Shown piece after piece: positions 1,364-14,972 of a DNA stretch of 14,972 nt (positions are counted from its first letter, which is position 1; each line of letters begins with the position of its first letter). The position numbers were made by a program, and so were the translations under genes. The stretch lies in sequence record MK054219.1, one strand, 5' to 3'. Under the pieces are notes generated by a model, which did no database searches, was not told the origin of the DNA, and was given only the letters and a program-made list of their open reading frames with translations.

Positions 1364-1804
1364 TCAGTTCACCAACTTTTTCATGATTTTTGCAATAAGT
1401 TCATCAAACTCCTTAATTCTAGCCGGAGGAAGAACTATCGCATTATTCCTCTGAATATCTTTGTTCCTAACCTTAACCTCATTCCATAGTTCATTTAATT
1501 TGTTGATTAAATCGGACAACTCTATAGTAACATTAACCTTAGCCTCAGCCTTTGGCTTATTCTCATTATAATTTATATTAATGTTAATTGATGCGGGTGT
1601 TATGTTATCTCTAATCAACTCTATGTTTAACTCTTTAGCCACTTTTTCAAAGTTCTCTTTATCATCTGAAAGGCTAAATATTAGTGACTCTAAGGCTAGC
1701 TTAACTATCCTCTTCTTTCTGGCATCTAGTCTAAGGTACTTTTCCTTCGCTAATGCATTTATCCTAAACGCCAAGAGTGATGTTACCCTTATCTCATCTG
1801 CCAT
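1364..1804 (-). CDS. Hypothetical 146-aa protein, possible RHH-like N-terminus and coiled-coil C-terminus
   Basis: GAGGTGA SD upstream of ATG; strand-helix-helix pattern [29 protein letters not shown]; amphipathic [17 protein letters not shown]. Confidence 0.75.
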
Positions 1805-1837
1805 TATTTCTCACCTCTGAAACTTTTACTAAAACTA

Positions 1838-2008
1838 CTGGGTAAGCAAAACCTTACTTTTACCCACTGACTGAAAGAGTATAGGAGTATAGTTAGTTTG
1901 TTAATTAGTGTTTGTTTGTTTGACGTTTGTTTAACAGTTTTTTCTGAATGGGTATAGGGGGGGTATAGTTTGTTTTTAGTGGGTAAATTTATGTTACTAT
2001 TTACCCAG
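1838..2008. repeat. Structured repeat region: two TGGGTAA-N14-TTACCCA dyads enclosing four G(A/G)GTATAG copies and TTTG repeats; candidate replication origin
   Basis: Dyads at 1839-1866 and 1980-2007 (both 28 bp); GAGTATAG at 1877 and 1885; GGGTATAG at 1950 and 1961; only 3 C on the plus strand in 1872-1996. Confidence 0.75.
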
Positions 2009-2026
2009 CCAATTTTTTGCATATGC

Positions 2027-2461
2027 TCACCCAAAATTTATTAAATTCAAAATCAGTTTTGTTAGTAGTTTCCCTTTTTCAGTTAGCTTATAGTAAGTTC
2101 TAGGGTCTGGGCTTATATGATAGCTCTGCACTAATCCAAACTCTTCCAGTTCATTCAGATACCTCTTTACATATTTGCCGTTTGTTCTCAATAATTCTTT
2201 AAATTTATTTACATGAAGTCCTTTATCTGTCCTATATAATATTAATAATATCTTTAACTGTTTATCCTCTTTATTATATAAATTATATAGGGATAATAGG
2301 ACTTCTATTAAACTCTTAGCCTTTGGCCTTGATTTTATTGCCTCTTCTTCTAACTCTTCTTCTTGGTCTTCCTTTACAACTTCTTCCTCATCCTCAACTA
2401 TTTCCTCTTTGTCTTGAATAATTTCTTCTTCCTCTTCAATTAGCTCTTCCCGGGGTTCCAA
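2027..2461 (-). CDS. Winged-helix (MarR-like) DNA-binding protein with a highly acidic N-terminal tail, ~144 aa; start revised to TTG 2461
   Basis: C-terminal KRYLNELEEFGLVQ...YYKLTEKGKLL wHTH signature; GGTGG SD before TTG 2461 and a TATA box at ~2495-2502. The 65 extra N-terminal codons in the ORF track overlap a promoter and an opposite-strand gene. Confidence 0.75.
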   Translation of the reverse strand: MEPREELIEEEEEIIQDKEEIVEDEEEVVKEDQEEELEEEAIKSRPKAKSLIEVLLSLYNLYNKEDKQLKILLILYRTDKGLHVNKFKELLRTNGKYVKRYLNELEEFGLVQSYHISPDPRTYYKLTEKGKLLTKLILNLINFG

Positions 2462-2477
2462 ACACACCCACCAATTA

Positions 2478-2516
2478 TACATATGTACAGAAAAGTTTAA
2501 AAGCTTTCTGTACATA
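2478..2516. promoter_or_regulatory. Bidirectional promoter: central TTTAAA flanked by a 12-bp inverted repeat operator
   Basis: TATGTACAGAAA (2482-2493), spacer AGTTTAAAAGC, TTTCTGTACATA (2505-2516); divergent starts at 2461 (-) and 2535 (+). Confidence 0.75.
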
Positions 2517-2534
2517 CACAAGTATGTGGGAAAA

Positions 2535-2693
2535 ATGGAATTTGAGCCTAAACCTAGACTGATGATAACCTTAAGTAAAGATACGTATGTTTTTTTGAAA
2601 AAATATTCTGAAGAGACTCGTAAACCAATTTCACATATAATTGAGGAACTAGTCAAAGAATATTTAATGAAGAAAGAGGTTGTAAAAGAATGA
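2535..2693 (+). CDS. 52-aa ribbon-helix-helix (CopG/F55-like) repressor (not in ORF track)
   Basis: MEFEPKPRLMITLSKDTYVFLKKYSEETRKPISHIIEELVKEYLMKKEVVKE: beta strand RLMITL, helix A, turn, helix B ISHIIEELVKEYL. Confidence 0.85.
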   Translation: MEFEPKPRLMITLSKDTYVFLKKYSEETRKPISHIIEELVKEYLMKKEVVKE

Positions 2694-2720
2694 TATCTAT
2701 GAATAGAATAAGGTGATTAA

Positions 2721-3002
2721 ATGAAAAGTACACCCTTCTTTTACCCAGAGGCAATAGTCTTAGCACATATATATGATAATGAAGGGATTGCGACTTACGA
2801 CCTCTATAAGAAAGTTAGTACGGATTTTCCTATGTCTTCGGCCACATTTTATGGTGCTAAGAAATTCTTAATACAAGAAGGCTTTATAGAGGAAAGACAA
2901 GAAAAGGGCGAAAAGAAACTTTACTTAACGGAAAAGGGGCGTTTATTTGCCATCTCACTTAAGCCCGGAATTGAAACGTATAAAAAGATTAAGAAAGAGT
3001 GA
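2721..3002 (+). CDS. f93: F93-family winged-helix transcription regulator, 93 aa
   Basis: MKSTPFFYPEAIVLA...EGIATYDLYKKV...LYLTEKG is near-identical to SSV1 F93; AGGTGA SD at 2711-2716. Confidence 0.93.
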   Translation: MKSTPFFYPEAIVLAHIYDNEGIATYDLYKKVSTDFPMSSATFYGAKKFLIQEGFIEERQEKGEKKLYLTEKGRLFAISLKPGIETYKKIKKE

Positions 3003-3005
3003 AAA

Positions 3006-3260
3006 TTATTTTTTCTTATTTTGTTCTATTTGCTTCATAAGGGCTTTGTAAGCGTTTTTAATAGCGGTTTCATTTAATGTACCATCTTCATTAAAAATGT
3101 CCTCGGCTTTGATTAGACCTAATTCATGTAGAACTACCGCATATGATAACAACACCGCAAAACTCCATGATACGGCCCCTTTCTTTAATGTGGTAAGGAT
3201 TTTATCTTGGAAGCTCTCTTTATTTTCCTTCTTTTCCTCCTTGCTCCCGAAAAAATTCAC
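3006..3260 (-). CDS. Hypothetical 84-aa protein
   Basis: GTG start overlapping the end of the upstream RHH gene; charged termini and a short hydrophobic core; no family recognised. Confidence 0.6.
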   Translation of the reverse strand: MNFFGSKEEKKENKESFQDKILTTLKKGAVSWSFAVLLSYAVVLHELGLIKAEDIFNEDGTLNETAIKNAYKALMKQIEQNKKK

Positions 3261-3417
3261 TATATTTTTCCTTTAATAGCTTTGCTCCTTCATCTATTAA
3301 TTCGCCTATAGATTTTCCAGTCCTTATCTTTAGTTCATTTAATATCATATAAGTTTCTTCCTCAATCGCTATGTTAAGCCTATACTTTACCCCTTTTTTA
3401 GTTTTTTCGATTACCAT
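3220..3417 (-). CDS. 65-aa ribbon-helix-helix protein, first gene of the leftward early operon
   Basis: YRLNIAIEEETYMILNELKIRTGKSIGELIDEG is an RHH pattern including the G-x-S turn; TATA box (TTTAAA 3441-3446) is 29 nt upstream of ATG. Confidence 0.8.
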   Translation of the reverse strand: MVIEKTKKGVKYRLNIAIEEETYMILNELKIRTGKSIGELIDEGAKLLKEKYSEFFREQGGKEGK

Positions 3418-3515
3418 ATCTGTACATATGTGTTGTCCCTTTTAAATATAATGTTTCTGCATTACTGTGTTTCTGTACAGAAAAATTTATATACCCACTG
3501 TACATATGTACAGAT
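3418..3515. promoter_or_regulatory. Divergent early promoters (T5/T6-like) carrying TGTACA operators
   Basis: Leftward TATA 3441-3446; rightward TTTATATA 3486-3493. ATCTGTACATATGT (3418-3431), palindrome TTTCTGTACAGAAA (3470-3483) and palindrome CTGTACATATGTACAG (3498-3513). Confidence 0.8.
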
Positions 3516-3530
3516 TAGAGGTTCCCCAAA

Positions 3531-3821
3531 ATGCAAGACCAAGAAGAAAGGGAAAACCTCGTAAAACAAAGTTCAGTTTTTTTACTTCTCACCACGGGTA
3601 GTAAAAAGTACGGAACATATCTACATGTCAAAATTGAGATAAATGAAGACGAAAAGATAATAAAAGAAATCTATGTCGACGATATCGGAATAGAGAATGA
3701 ATTAAGGAAGCTAAAAAGGTTATATGAAGTGTATGGCTTTGCTATGTCTGATGAAACACAGGAGGCAATAAGAAAAGAAGTATTGATAGAAATAGCGAAG
3801 ATTCTGCATTTGTTCCTGTGA
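3531..3821 (+). CDS. a100: A100-family protein, 96 aa
   Basis: SVFLLLT.G.K.YG.YLH.KIE..EDEK..KEIY.D....[13 protein letters not shown] matches SSV1 A100. Confidence 0.88.
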
Positions 3822-4241: not shown

Positions 4242-4476
4242 ATGCCCTATTTGTGGTTTCACAACGATTAGATTATTCGCATTGAAACAACATACGCGAA
4301 GGAATCATGTGCTAAATAAATGTCCAGTTTGCAATAATTCGTATGTAAGGCTTAATCAACACTTTTACGGTAAGTACGATATCGATCATCTCGTATATTG
4401 TTATCTATTTACTACTTACAAGTTACCTAAGAGCGTTAGGTTGGCAATTAAACGTAAATTAGAGGTGGGTCAATAA
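4234..4476 (+). CDS. a79: A79-family C2H2 zinc-finger protein, 80 aa
   Basis: MFRCPICGF..RLFALKQHTRR.H..KCP.C matches SSV1 A79. Confidence 0.92.
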   Translation: MFRCPICGFTTIRLFALKQHTRRNHVLNKCPVCNNSYVRLNQHFYGKYDIDHLVYCYLFTTYKLPKSVRLAIKRKLEVGQ

Positions 4477-4607
4477 TGTATCAGTGTTTACGTTGTGGCG
4501 GTATATTTAGGAAAAGAAGGGAAGTGGTTGAGCATTTGCTTAGTGGGCATATGCAGAGCAAGTTTACGCTAGAATATTTCTATATCTACTTCAGGGTGAG
4601 AGAATGA
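4476..4607 (+). CDS. a45: A45-family C2H2 zinc-finger protein, 43 aa (not in ORF track)
   Basis: MYQCLRCGGIFRKRREVVEHLLSGHMQSKFTLEYFYIYFRVRE; TAATG overlap upstream and ATGA overlap downstream; matches SSV1 A45. Confidence 0.92.
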   Translation: MYQCLRCGGIFRKRREVVEHLLSGHMQSKFTLEYFYIYFRVRE

Positions 4608-4897
4608 TGATAGCGGAATTATTAGCATTCTATGGTATGCACTTTAACGATTATTTTACAACGGTATTAGGGCTTAGAATTGAGGGAGTGAGAGAGGTTA
4701 ATGCAATTGCGAGGAAATTCATTGAAACGCCTTTACGATTAGCGTTCTATAAATTTTCTTTAGCTACGTTACTTCTTATCGTAATTTTAATATTTCATAT
4801 TGCACCCACATCGATGATTTATTATGATAGTGTGATAGAGGCGTTTGTAGTTGGCTGGAACATAATAACGATTAGGAGGCATAAGGTGAGAAGATGA
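4604..4897 (+). CDS. C102b-like membrane protein, 97 aa
   Basis: Hydrophobic segments (LATLLLIVILIFHI; VIEAFVVGWNII); position between a45 and b129 is that of SSV1 c102b. Confidence 0.75.
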   Translation: MMIAELLAFYGMHFNDYFTTVLGLRIEGVREVNAIARKFIETPLRLAFYKFSLATLLLIVILIFHIAPTSMIYYDSVIEAFVVGWNIITIRRHKVRR

Positions 4898-6101: not shown

Positions 6102-7010
6102 ATGAGGAAGTCCCTTCTAGCCCTTCTAACCCTATCCCTAGCGTTACTATCGCTTTTAATAACTCCAACAATTGCAGGAGTAATAATACCGCCATCATCA
6201 CCGATACCGATAAATCAAATTTCATCATCAACTGATTCAAACCTTTTAGGGTATGTGTTTGAGTTTGCTAATAACGGTCAAGTGCAACCGACTTCATATG
6301 CCTCAATCTCTGTGCCAATCCCATCTTCAATACCATATTATTATAATCCTAATGAATACTGGTATGATAACATGTATGCCTTTTGGGTGGCTCTTTCACC
6401 GTATACTATTGGTAATGGGGCAAGCACAACTTTCTTGCAAGCGGGAGTTGATTTATTGGAAAATCAAAGTGCGAAATACGTGCTACTTTTTGTGTATCTG
6501 GTGGTAAATAACAACGCTCATCCATTGGTATCATATCAATATCCGTATAGCCAGTTCGCGGGTACAACTATGAACATATATCTTTACCTTTCTAACGGTA
6601 ATGTAGTTGCACAATTCTCAGATGGGAGTTTTTCATATACCTATAATACCGGAATCAGTTTTACTCCATATTCTGCTCTAGTGATGGGTGAAGCACCCGG
6701 TTATTACCAGAGCGGAGTGAACAAATCAATTTTGTTCTACCCAATTCCTAACGAAACCTTTAGCGGAATATCATTTAACATAATTGGAAGTCCCGCTACT
6801 GCAGTAGGGTATGAAACTATAAAATACGCTACAAACTATCCTATCGCAAATAATTATATTAGTAGTAATTATGCATGGGCTTTTGCTTGGTTGTCCAGTA
6901 GCCCTTCATTTTCCGCAAACGCCTACACGTCAAGTAGTAGTGCTCAAATATCGGGAACCTTACAACTTAGTTACACAGAAACACCGTTAGGTCTATTGTA
7001 TATTGCCTAA
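6102..7010 (+). CDS. a291: A291-family secreted protein, 302 aa (family reported as the SSV killer toxin)
   Basis: Signal peptide MRKSLLALLTLSLALLSLLITPTIA as in SSV1 A291; internal matches (VALSPY, YSQFAGT, GSPATAV); S/Y/N-rich beta-type body; no C-terminal anchor. Confidence 0.8.
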   Translation: MRKSLLALLTLSLALLSLLITPTIAGVIIPPSSPIPINQISSSTDSNLLGYVFEFANNGQVQPTSYASISVPIPSSIPYYYNPNEYWYDNMYAFWVALSPYTIGNGASTTFLQAGVDLLENQSAKYVLLFVYLVVNNNAHPLVSYQYPYSQFAGTTMNIYLYLSNGNVVAQFSDGSFSYTYNTGISFTPYSALVMGEAPGYYQSGVNKSILFYPIPNETFSGISFNIIGSPATAVGYETIKYATNYPIANNYISSNYAWAFAWLSSSPSFSANAYTSSSSAQISGTLQLSYTETPLGLLYIA

Positions 7011-7303: not shown

Positions 7304-9706
7304 ATGAAGTGGGGACTATTATTCGCTATTTTCTTTATATCTCTTTTTTCTCTCAACTCCTTAGCTTTACTTATAGGTGGAGGAGGGCCTAATAATAGCG
7401 GTGCGGGAGTTTATACTCAAACTATAACGGTAAATGGGGGTTTAGCGAGTACAACACTAAACGGAAATACGCTTTTTAACGCACCTTGGACAAACCCATC
7501 ATACTTATCAAACACATCCACGGGTGGGCTAATCATAATACCAGACCAGAGTTATACTTACAATAACGTTTCGTTCCTACCTAGTGGTAATGGGGGATTC
7601 GCGTTAAACGTCACCTTCACTACACCTTATGTAAATTCACCGGGCGGTGCATTTGCTATAGGGTTTGGAACTTACATTCCCGGTTCTGTGCAGGAAAATT
7701 GGGGGCCAGCAAATATTCCGCCGGATGGTATTATAGTAGTAATTGAGCACGGTGCCATGAGTACCTACCATCTCTTTGTAATATTAACGGGCCATATAAT
7801 AGCCAACATTTCATTAGGTTTCACAACATTAAGTAGTTCTGTTACTTACGGTTTAGGGTTTGAATATGAAGCAACCCCAACCGGGACTTCGTTTGAAAGC
7901 TTTATAGATGTCTTCTGGTTTAACGGTACTCTACACACATTCGGCCTAACGAATACTAACTACTATTTCACCTCAACTACTAATGTCATAAATAATAATT
8001 ATGAAATAGGTGCGTTCAATGGAGGCCCGATATTCGGTTATTCCGAATACGAGATAGTTAATTATCGGTACTTTAAGCAGGTAACGGCACAACTGACTAT
8101 TAGTTATTTCGCATTATCGTATAACATCTATCATTTCTTAATGGCCTATGCGGGTGCGGGGAATCCCGTAAACATTTCAGGTGCATTATATAGCATATCG
8201 GGCATAGTTTCACAGAAAAACTTTACAATAACGGGTATACAACAAGGCTTAGCATACACCTTTAACATTTTAGGGAAGTCAAACGGATTATATTTACTTT
8301 ACACGGGGCCAATCGAAGGTAACCCACCAACATGGTACGTAAACGTAACCATAGGGCTTCAAATCGTTACATCTCAAGTAACGATAAACTACAACCTAAC
8401 TATACCCGTAATTGTTGAGGGCTATGCACTATATCCTAGCGTCAATTTGCCTAGCGGAACTTATCTAAGCGGGCAAACAATCAGTTTTACACTGACCAAC
8501 TTCGTAGGTTATCCCTCAAATCTAGGTTATTATACTGCAGTATCAGAGCGGGCTAACGTATCAATAAACGGTGTTACGTACCCGATACCCTATAGTTTTA
8601 CGCCTATAGTCCAAGTACCTACTACTTATTACTACACAGTAATCGTAACTGAAGGTCCAATATCAATGATAGATTATAGTGGTAGTTTCACAGTATTGCC
8701 CGCACAGAGTTACCCCGTGTTATTCGTTACTTCTTATCCTAGAATCGGGATATTAGGGCAAACGATAACGATAACGTTCCAATTCACTTACAATAGTCCC
8801 GTCTCGAATGTAACACAATCCGCATTAACGCAAACTACTAGCACTTTCGCATTTACTTATGCATCTATAATAACGTCGTCATCATTGATACAATTCAAGG
8901 CGTATTGGCTTAATGCAAGTGATGGTTTAATAATCATTACGCAAAGTCAGAATTTCTTAATCCCCTTCAACTATGTAGGGCTAACATGGTACAATAATAG
9001 CGTTAATACAGTGCAGATTAACGTTATTAATAACGCGTTACAATTAACGATTAACGGTGGTACGCTTAACATAGCTAACTCATCTAAAGTGATAGGCTTA
9101 GGCTTCTACTACGGTGCGGGGAAACTTGTACTGAACTGGTTCTTCGTTAGCGGTATCGTTTTACAAAGTGCTACGGCTAACCAAGCATATATAATATTGA
9201 TCGGGACTAACCCATCAACATTGACACAATATGTAACGGGTTACACTAACGCTAGCGGTTTCGGAAACGTAACGCTAAAACTATCCTATAGTCCTTATGA
9301 GCTTATTGACGTATATTGGTACGGCGTTACATATCAGATACTAAACATTAGCGTTTCAAATACTACTACAGTAAGCAGCACCACCACAGTGAATACCACT
9401 ACTCTTAACTACAACTACACTAAGCCGTTTAGTAATAACATTGCCCCTAACTCCTCACTATATAACTTCTCTCAATACCAACCATGGGCGGAAATCATCG
9501 GGATTGTGGTTACTTTACTTATCGCGTTACTAGGTTGGAAATTCGGCGGTAGTGCGGGTGCATCGGGTGGTGCGGTTATGGGGCTAATCGCCACTGCATA
9601 TTTGGGGCTATTACCATGGTACATCTTTTATGTCTTTGTACTTGGCATAGCGCTACTGTTAGCGAAAACGTTTGTGGATAGGTTTATGGGGAGGGAGGAA
9701 GAATGA
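7304..9706 (+). CDS. vp4: VP4 (C792-family) tail/adsorption glycoprotein, 800 aa
   Basis: N-terminal signal ([21 protein letters not shown]), many N-x-S/T sequons, beta-rich T/S/Y/N body, Thr-rich linker, C-terminal TM segments; largest ORF, in the canonical position. Confidence 0.9.
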
Positions 9707-14043: not shown

Positions 14044-14199
14044 AAATATTTCACGTCTTTTTACGTCCTATTTAGCCTATTAAATGTACAAACTAATTTT
14101 TAGTGGTCACTGTATAAAGTGACCAAATAACGTTTTTGTAGTCGGGAATCCCGACGGCATAAAATTTTGTAAGAAATTGTAAAAATCAAAATTCAAAGC
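14044..14199. other. Convergent intergenic region with two inverted repeats and T/A tracts
   Basis: TGGTCACT-GTATAA-AGTGACCA (14104-14125) and GTCGGGA-A-TCCCGAC (14141-14155). Confidence 0.6.
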
Positions 14200-14972
14200 T
14201 TAAATATTCTGTTTCAACCATTCCGCATACTTCTTATACTCTTTTTTCGCTAAAGTGAGTAAGTCAAGATAATGTTTCGTTAGGATATTGCCGGGCGTCC
14301 TACCTTCGATAAAGTCCACGATTTCGCCCGGTACTCCTAACTCTAGCATTTTTGTGGCCGTGAATTTCCTGAGGTATTTAGGCGGTACTAGGTTAAGCCT
14401 TCTTACTGCACTAGTTACCTGACCTTCCGTAATTTTTATTTGTTGCAATGGAGTTACGTGGAATAAGTAGAAGCTCTTCTTTTGCCCCCTAGACCAATTA
14501 AGCATGTAAATGCTAAACACTTCTTCCCTAATCTCGTTTTGCGGGTTATACTCGTTTAGGGTTTTTAACCCTTCAACCTCTCTAGCACCGCTTTCCAGTA
14601 AAAGCCGATATAATAAATATAAATTAGGGTATTGTTTGACGGTACTTAACGTTTTGCGTACTTCCTCTAACGTAGGTACCTTGAGGTCTGGTTTCGTTTT
14701 CTTAACTTTCAAACTTTCGGGCGGGTCTCTGTTCAAGACTAAGCGATAAAAGTTACGCCATGCCTTAATGCAGTTATTCGATTCTTTTCTTCCTTGCTTA
14801 ACGCATGAGATATATTTCTTTATTGTCTCTTCACTGATATTTTTACTACGTAAAGCAATTTCGAATTTGAGTAAATCGCTTGCGGAAATTTCAGAGTTGT
14901 TAGAAGACGTTAGATTAGAGTCAATTATTCTAACTCCTTTCAATTCATTTTGAGATAATGACGTAAAATTAA
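14200..14972 (-). CDS. int: Integrase C-terminal fragment (intC) with the tyrosine recombinase catalytic domain
   Basis: ESGAR, KYLRK, FIEGR and KHY motifs of SSV-type integrases; frame is open from 14972 and continues the intN frame across the 1/14972 junction (1023 nt total, 340 aa). Confidence 0.95.
   Translation of the reverse strand, partial: NFTSLSQNELKGVRIIDSNLTSSNNSEISASDLLKFEIALRSKNISEETIKKYISCVKQGRKESNNCIKAWRNFYRLVLNRDPPESLKVKKTKPDLKVPTLEEVRKTLSTVKQYPNLYLLYRLLLESGAREVEGLKTLNEYNPQNEIREEVFSIYMLNWSRGQKKSFYLFHVTPLQQIKITEGQVTSAVRRLNLVPPKYLRKFTATKMLELGVPGEIVDFIEGRTPGNILTKHYLDLLTLAKKEYKKYAEWLKQNI

Follow-up and report, generated by a model that had tools for sequence, protein, structure and literature searches.

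The subject of this analysis is a stretch of about 200 bp (the element) in the complete circular genome of Sulfolobus spindle-shaped virus (SSV) strain M.06.0.8v2 (MK054219.1, 14,972 bp; this whole genome is the window, and all coordinates are those of the window unless another record is named). The virus comes from Mutnovsky, Kamchatka, and its host is S. islandicus. The element is situated in the minus-strand T5-like early operon, between a winged-helix gene and a gene for a 146-aa protein. A sequence-only reading had proposed this place as a replication origin, made of twin dyads, iteron-like repeats and an easily unwound, strand-skewed core. We find support for one half of this proposal, namely a functional DNA-level element in place of an ordinary gene, in conserved repeats and in the absence of a codon signature or any selection on the peptide; the origin half fares badly, as expectations specific to an origin fail. 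Fuselloviruses are model temperate viruses of hyperthermophilic archaea, and their cis-acting DNA has scarcely been defined beyond promoters and attP. The features of the locus, in gene sense, are the following.

2027-2461 (annotated to 2515), minus strand: winged-helix regulator of the SSV10 D154 family, directly upstream of the element (PMC6080066, section 3.7)
1980..2007, unstranded: upstream dyad unit, TGGGTAA-N14-TTACCCA, with its first base 19 nt past the regulator stop codon
1950..1968, unstranded: upstream-side TATAC repeats, CTATACCCCCCCTATACCC on the gene-sense strand
1894..1949, unstranded: variable centre, degenerate here, with TTTG repeats and a T6 run at 1937-1942 (plus strand)
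1878..1893, unstranded: downstream-side TATAC repeats, two copies of CTATACTC on the gene-sense strand
1839..1866, unstranded: downstream dyad unit, same arms and N14 spacing, ending 3 nt short of the leader of the 146-aa gene
1809-1835, minus strand: conserved leader ahead of the 146-aa gene, with the Shine-Dalgarno motif GGTGA (1811-1815 in plus-strand numbering)
1804..2022, minus strand: annotated CDS AZG03495.1, a 72-aa hypothetical protein (GenBank), here called the bridge frame
1364-1804, minus strand: 146-aa helical protein (PHROG 11638; SSV-RH E152/SSV10 D152 family), the first gene downstream of the element

The two dyads, 141 bp apart from start to start, stand exactly where the sequence-only reading had put them, and a scan of all 14,972 bp that tolerated up to two mismatches returns only these two matches, against 0.07 expected; none of 200 shuffled sequences reached two. 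The upstream unit is asymmetric, with an additional TTAC 7 bp inside one of its arms. The smaller repeats and the C-poor stretch reported between the dyads are equally real: GAGTATAG occurs twice at 1878-1893, GGGTATAG-GGG-GGGTATAG at 1950-1968, TTTG repeats are visible at about 1896-1932, and the 125 nt of 1872-1996 contain 3 C, the lowest count of any base in any interval of this length in the genome (the mean for C is 23). The TATA cores of the smaller repeats stand at mirror-image distances from both dyads, which makes the element as a whole quasi-palindromic, over about 200 bp, around a hairpin as its centre.

A module shared by some fuselloviruses

In BLAST and tblastn searches, the regulator was found in 11 distinct fuselloviruses and the element in precisely these 11. 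The carriers come from Kamchatka (MK054219; MK054207 and MK054208, with a 100% identical element; MK054205 and MK054213, with 92% identity; and MK054210), Iceland (SSV3, SSV4 and SSV5) and North America (SSV8/Ragged Hills, or SSV-RH; SSV10/Lassen; and the Yellowstone strains MK054221 and MK054227). A twelfth carrier, SSV2, was recovered by a genome-wide scan for recurrent dyads. Its twin TGAGTCA/TGACTCA pairs, at 4658-4697 and 4792-4832, directly follow the MarR-like ORF106, and the region is annotated as the N-terminus of ORF310, an in-frame fusion. In the centre of the SSV2 element (NC_005265, 4600-4860), a perfect palindrome of 11 bp, CTGTCAGACAG, is present in three copies; MK054213 has a related motif in its replaced centre. 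Three more loci with regulator and element are found on metagenome contigs (L018, L139 and L143). The site and the regulator are co-inherited: 12 viruses and 3 metagenome loci carry both, and viruses without the regulator are also without the site.

SSV6, SSV21 and SSeV have no regulator, half-sites or dyads, and in these genomes a small upstream gene abuts the E152/D152-type gene directly; the regulator and the element thus behave as one insert. Neither is present in about ten further Kamchatka SSVs, whose core regions are 92-95% identical. SSV1 has no convincing copy, as a single GAGTAA/TTACTC pair in E-178 is not counted as an element. The element is also absent from SSV9; that genome bears a MarR-like gene in truncated form at another place, and the pair of large palindromes it contains is a different one. 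Searches outside this set gave no match among PLSDB plasmids, no relatives in a scan of genome contigs with the regulator alignment, and nothing beyond known SSVs in IMG/VR, where a scan for the bare dyad pattern hit unrelated single chance matches and never twins.

The carriers have a common plan. In gene sense, the regulator stop is followed by a dyad unit (or three to four tandem units in the type-B viruses described below), TATAC repeats, C-runs and an A-run; then come the central palindrome, a short T-run, TATAC repeats again, the second dyad unit, the near-invariant GGTGA leader and the start of the next gene. The copy number and spacing of the upstream-side TATAC repeats differ among relatives (6, 8, 9 or 11 bp). 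We found no description of the element in the literature that we searched. One and the same element stands behind many annotation names (AZG03495, SSV-RH D110, SSV4 ORF64, SSV10 F102/F111 and the N-terminus of SSV2 ORF310), so that a "hypothetical protein" of many names is recast here as a conserved DNA element tied to a MarR-like gene.

The regulator itself matches PHROG 12817, "transcriptional regulator", at 2e-52, and has Pfam matches to HxlR, PadR and MarR; its closest solved structures are MJ223, QsrR/YybR and Lrs14-like proteins. In the AlphaFold model, a canonical winged helix-turn-helix (wHTH) domain, with the recognition helix at residues 95-107, is preceded by a long, acidic helix at the N-terminus. 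The annotated start at 2515 is upstream of a TGTACA/TATA palindrome at 2482-2516; the TTG at 2459-2461, just 3' of this TGTACA/TATA promoter, is the more plausible start. On the other side of the element lie early genes for the 146-aa protein, a D63-like protein and a nuclease. The 146-aa protein has no PDB sequence match and no Foldseek match, and its fold is not recognisable in a model of moderate quality (pLDDT 65).

Half-sites, spacers and the rearranged centre

The elements fall into two types. Type A, comprising the M.06.0.8v2 clade and SSV3, SSV4 and SSV5, has GGGTAA/TTACCC arms and a 14-bp spacer. Type B, comprising SSV-RH, Lassen, MK054210, the Yellowstone strains, SSV2 and the metagenome loci, has GAGT(C/A)A and T(G/T)ACTC arms and spacers of 23-27 bp; type-B homologues of the unit at 1839-1866 have GAGTMA/TGACTC arms with N23 spacing. 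The adjoining leader, 1809-1835, is almost invariant in the type-A Kamchatka viruses and the type-B viruses. Of the 25 dyads, all are complementary at arm position 2 (6 G:C pairs in type A and 19 A:T pairs in type B, without any mixture) and 14 are non-complementary at position 5, and the distance between arm centres changes from about 20 bp to 29-33 bp between the types, which is a change of about one helical turn. The hairpins are marginal at 78 C (-0.1 to -3.4 kcal/mol), and the predicted dyad hairpins have only -0.1 to -2.4 kcal/mol. The concerted change at position 2, the asymmetry at position 5 and the shift in spacing together fit protein half-sites and speak against hairpin stems. Conservation of a single unit can be extreme: the one at 1980-2007 is identical in 26 of 27 positions to a unit in the Icelandic SSV3, SSV4 and SSV5, although the adjoining regulators are only about 65% identical as proteins.

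The centre behaves differently. In the relatives, it is a palindrome with a 12-bp stem and a GTGTAGAC or GTGTTAAC core, placed between the A-run and the T-run, and the two versions are related by compensatory change (GTGTAGAC/GTCTACAC versus GTGTTAAC/GTTAACAC). We considered a correspondence between the first residue of the recognition helix and this palindrome (Lys with GTGTAGAC) and dropped it, since one metagenome locus (P0004/L139) has Lys with GTGTTAAC. In M.06.0.8v2 the palindrome is degenerate, and MK054213 and SSV2 have other palindromes in its stead. Rearrangement breakpoints coincide with the centre; in particular, M.06.0.8v2 and MK054213 differ by replacement of the centre alone. 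In metagenome contigs L017/L142 and L141, a type-B element extends up to the loop of the central hairpin and then gives way to unrelated sequence (about 1490-1510 of L017), and MK054221 contains an N, with its downstream half duplicated, beginning directly behind the hairpin. In SSV4, the centre is bracketed by an 18-bp perfect inverted repeat. Compared with 1839-2007 of the window, the two 28-bp units of this virus have exchanged places and are inverted with respect to the genes on either side (26/27 and 23/27 identity when aligned in the inverted sense), but the orientation of the TATAC repeats is unchanged, which implies past inversions within the element.

Such rearrangements bring to mind an array for another protein, engaged in the topology or inheritance of DNA, such as a site of recombination, inversion or multimer resolution, or a centromere-like site of the sopC/parS type. 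We regard this as unlikely. In the res sites of Tn3 and gamma-delta, the same inverted half-sites have different spacers in neighbouring subsites, much as the arms do here, and an intergenic site doubles as a regulatory site; the plasmid centromeres (F sopC, P1 parS and the AspA site of Sulfolobus pNOB8) resemble the element in having 7-bp inverted-repeat units directly 3' of a small DNA-binding gene, in the three to four tandem units of type B, and in being accessory traits with a patchy distribution. The flipped and swapped units of SSV4 with the retained TATAC orientation, the 18-bp inverted repeat around its centre and the breakpoints in the central hairpin all fit a site of this kind. However, no partition NTPase, adaptor or extra recombinase was seen among the annotated neighbours of any locus in a search that was not exhaustive; the ParA-type motor or adaptor of a centromere and the serine resolvase of res have no recognisable counterpart near the element; the units are few for a centromere; the site of the SSV integrase is inside the integrase gene itself; and the element bears no sign of recombination products, with no inversion variants among near-identical genomes or RNA contigs.

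An open frame over the repeats, transcription and insertion mutagenesis

The bridge frame is fitted closely into the operon. It opens with an ATG 4 nt past a GGTGA motif that shares bases with the regulator stop, and its own stop overlaps the next ATG, as TAATG in M.06.0.8v2 and as ATGA in MK054213, or is generally within about 20 nt of the next start. In each lineage an open frame spans the element, beyond what is seen in dinucleotide-preserving shuffles (10, 70, 2, 1 and 0 of 2000). Within this frame, substitutions are spread evenly over the three codon positions (14/18/17 for SSV-RH and Lassen, 27/26/36 for SSV-RH and MK054210, 28/23/26 for Lassen and MK054210), whereas the flanking genes of the same virus pairs have the usual third-position excess (for example, 24/21/43, 28/10/50 and 56/32/91). 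At the same time, the element diverges no more than its neighbours: 13.8% versus 19.6% and 19.3% in the flanking genes for SSV-RH and Lassen, and 25.1% versus 29.8% and 39.8% for SSV-RH and MK054210.

Least probable of the explanations that we considered is that of the annotation, in which the repeats are incidental to an ordinary gene for a small protein (72 aa here; D110 of SSV-RH; F111 of SSV10, a "2-TMH membrane protein"). It would account for a frame kept open beyond chance, for Shine-Dalgarno-like motifs and start codons, for type-B indels that are, where seen, multiples of three, and for the hydrophobic character of the type-B products. But it sits poorly with the lack of third-position bias, and with the fact that the clade of M.06.0.8v2 uses a different frame from the others at the 3' end, over homologous DNA. 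The products cannot be aligned; the 72-aa protein has no similarity to SSV-RH D110, an E value of 0.03 to SSV4 ORF64, and no match to a Pfam or PHROG family. The sense strand has 3 G in 125 nt, and the SSV3 annotators left the region uncalled. From these sequence comparisons we conclude that selection acts on the DNA sites and on the openness of the frame, and not on the peptide. This is the opposite of the outcome that would have spoken against a DNA element, namely repeats that are not conserved under a frame with purifying selection. The frame is most simply kept open for translational coupling and avoidance of polarity in the operon; that it runs across an array of sites follows from the position of the array inside a polycistronic transcription unit. 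An open frame over a putative protein-binding array, free of constraint on the peptide, represents an unusual overlap of constraints in a compact archaeal operon.

Transcription of the element was assessed with contigs from four DNase-type RNA libraries of one 2021 study with a closely related virus, for which strand and level are not given; stranded RNA-seq of DNase-treated samples is on record for S. islandicus chronically infected with Mutnovsky SSVs (PMC8628083). The contigs cover 1359 to 3100-3440 without interruption, extend in the other direction as far as about 312, and break where the divergent promoters leave a gap, at 3440-3600. Transcription therefore includes the element along with its two neighbours, and no strong stop is present inside it. 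The ends of the early-region contigs (about 305-315) and the break over 3440-3600 suggest that the T5-like transcript stops ahead of the integrase gene and that 3440-3600 is an untranscribed gap between divergent promoters.

Since the element is transcribed, it could act as RNA, either as a structured segment between cistrons of the T5-like mRNA or as a small antisense RNA, which would start at the near-palindromic A/T box of the leader and end at the central hairpin and T-run, where the terminator is stronger on the antisense strand. The compensatory AG/CT to TA/TA changes of the central hairpin and the T-runs that follow it on the antisense strand (T7 in SSV4, T5AT4 in SSV-RH and T6 in the window) agree with this. 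Still, we hold a role as RNA to be improbable: a scan of 1500-3700 against Rfam gave nothing relevant, dyad hairpins are close to 0 kcal/mol at 78 C, more than half of the dyads are mismatched at arm position 5, the central hairpin is absent from M.06.0.8v2 and replaced in MK054213, and a canonical promoter is lacking.

The homologous region of SSV10 (Lassen) has been a target of insertion mutagenesis. With Tn5 inserted at 6453, in "F111", virus was obtained in 0/3 trials; insertions in E62, D154 (the regulator) and D152 likewise yielded none, but those further downstream, in F64, E138 and F199, were tolerated (Goodman and Stedman 2018, PMC6080066, Table 3). F111 corresponds to GenBank F102 and to the element; the record coordinates place 6453 within the TATAC repeats of the downstream side, 20 nt ahead of the dyad. 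In the original publication, F111 was interpreted as a membrane protein with two helices (PMC6080066). We argue, on the grounds of sequence given above, that it is probably a DNA-level entity and not the supposed membrane protein. The element belongs to the one block in the T5 operon of SSV10 where transposon insertions were not tolerated, and the published experiment acquires another interpretation. As the 2-kb insertion is probably polar on D152, it neither proves nor disproves a function in cis; the result means that the element region of SSV10 is not freely dispensable, with polarity as a confounder.

Regulatory array or origin of replication

That the fusellovirus origin has not been firmly mapped, as the sequence-only reading stated, is in accord with the literature (PMC6080066, PMC9608457), and no SSV origin is known. 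An origin at this place would have to be specific to a lineage: the dyad units would be initiator sites around a strand-asymmetric core, bound by the winged-helix protein or by a host factor, all inside a translated frame. The two-fold symmetry of the repeats around a central palindrome, the extreme conservation of the 27-bp unit and the rearrangement hot spot at the centre are compatible with such a role. So is the keto skew, with a G+T fraction of 0.744 in 1872-1996, about 3.9 sd above the mean and within 1% of the genome maximum (0.752, in an overlapping interval from 1877). The loss of virus in the Tn5 experiment, with the same outcome in three neighbours of the element (PMC6080066, Table 3), and the helicase module that occupies the same genome slot in SSV9, beside large palindromes, also point in this direction. 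Comparable systems are phage lambda, with its origin inside gene O, and iteron origins in general; the likeness consists in repeated units of internal dyad symmetry, placed within a reading frame of an early operon and traversed by transcription.

We nevertheless consider an origin at this place unlikely. The element is missing from SSV1, SSV6, SSV9, SSV21, SSeV and about ten close Kamchatka relatives, even though SSV6, SSV21 and SSeV keep the same flanking genes. The core cannot be called easily unwound: 1867-1979 has 32.7% GC versus 37.9% in the genome, which is just the 15th percentile, and the lowest GC content (18.6%) occurs at 2185, within the regulator gene. Unlike the lambda and iteron origins, the element has neither a linked initiator nor an AT-rich flank, and there are only two units here; the neighbours are the MarR/HxlR-like wHTH protein and the helical protein, and the DnaA-like gene of all examined SSV records is far away. 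No motif resembling an origin recognition box (ORB) is found in the element, and an ORB-like pattern has one weak match elsewhere in the genome, against 3.6 expected. The cumulative skew that the sequence-only reading had offered as a check turns elsewhere, with a GC skew minimum at about 3450-3600 and a maximum at about 14,100-14,250; the element is only a local blip on this curve, in which gene orientation is the dominant and confounding factor. Finally, the element is transcribed and held in an open frame inside an operon, and polarity on the essential D152 explains the Tn5 result equally well.

A variant of the origin hypothesis, to which we grant the same low probability, treats the regulator and the element as a self-contained, exchangeable replicator module, a lineage-specific origin with two-fold symmetric initiator sites inside a frame that is kept open only for translational coupling. 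If this were true, the variable T5 slot would be a place of different replicons, with the helicase module and palindromes in SSV9 and the present module in viruses of the SSV2, SSV4, SSV8 and SSV10 types. In SSV-K1/SSV9 (NC_005361), the stretch at 8209-8864 is largely non-coding, adjoins the helicase/A460 module and contains two copies of a complex palindrome, with 11-bp arms and an N15 spacer, at 8254-8290 and 8488-8524, within 22-bp inverted repeats. This stretch is a separate origin candidate, for fuselloviruses of the T5+ type.

Regulation of the early operon is more likely here than the start of DNA copying. Our preferred interpretation, based on sequence comparison and held with a probability of roughly 0.4, is that 1805-2026 may be a regulator-linked protein-binding array that controls the downstream early genes. 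The element would be a cis-acting sequence of non-coding type, a two-fold symmetric array of putative protein sites, about 200 bp in length, that forms one module with the upstream winged-helix gene. The winged-helix protein, or a complex containing it, would occupy both dyad units, possibly bridging the approximately 140 bp between them, and this occupancy would set the amount of transcription passing from the regulator gene to the downstream early genes, either through a roadblock or loop or through control of a weak internal start beside the downstream dyad. The open frame would let ribosomes proceed from the regulator stop to the next start, with the peptide itself irrelevant. Weak candidates for a promoter or transcription start are provided by the TATAC cores and by the A/T box of the leader.

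This arrangement has parallels in two groups of known systems. At operators of the MarR/HxlR type, including those of Sulfolobus BldR and BldR2, palindromic sites adjoin a wHTH gene, and operator and regulator are inherited as a block (compare the TGTACA set elsewhere in this genome). As in the dual-operator loops of gal (OE/OI) and lac (O1/O3), two similar sites, here about 140 bp apart, surround a regulated junction. In contrast to both groups, the half-sites of the element are 20-33 bp apart, versus about 10-12, and the element is downstream of the regulator gene, within a transcribed and translated stretch, with no canonical promoter between the sites.

Linkage suggests the adjacent winged-helix protein as the binder, but the protein itself provides mixed evidence. 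In the H1-H2 segment (residues 71-93), the M.06.0.8v2 protein is closest to that of type-A SSV4 (17/23 identities, versus 12-13/23 for type-B proteins), and in both segments that flank H1-H2 it is closer to the type-B proteins. This mosaic is hard to explain by one recombination tract, because the C-terminal segment separates H1-H2 from the element.

Several observations weigh against the regulatory interpretation with the adjacent regulator as the binder. MK054210 shares the recognition helix of the M.06.0.8v2 protein, yet its arms are of type B; conversely, the recognition helix of SSV2 ORF106 is very different, yet the arms are GAGTCA/TGACTC, as in SSV-RH. The outer arms, at 20-33 bp from centre to centre, are too far apart for one compact dimer of the MarR type, and a pair at about 12 bp is formed by the inner GTAA-N8-TTAC alone, in type-A units only. 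A comparison by eye with the consensus (PMC6080066, section 3.8) detects no canonical Sulfolobus/SSV TATA box or TFB recognition element (BRE) in the element. The sites are downstream of the regulator gene, and the promoter of the regulator bears a different palindrome, TGTACA. With support for the adjacent regulator thus mixed, the binder may also be a host factor or another viral protein. In any event, the comparison yields a defined 230-bp target and two natural types of specificity, with GGGTAA and GAGTMA arms, for assays of binding, transcription and replication.

Two minor observations concern other parts of the genome. A second recurrent dyad, with 7-bp arms (ACGTAAA), occurs twice, at 213-240 and at 4452-4493, and may be due to chance. 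At 3595-3634, loose ends of RNA contigs join the Sulfolobus CRISPR repeat GATAATCTACTATAGAATTGAAAG to viral sequence, indicating that host arrays with spacers against this region were transcribed in those samples.

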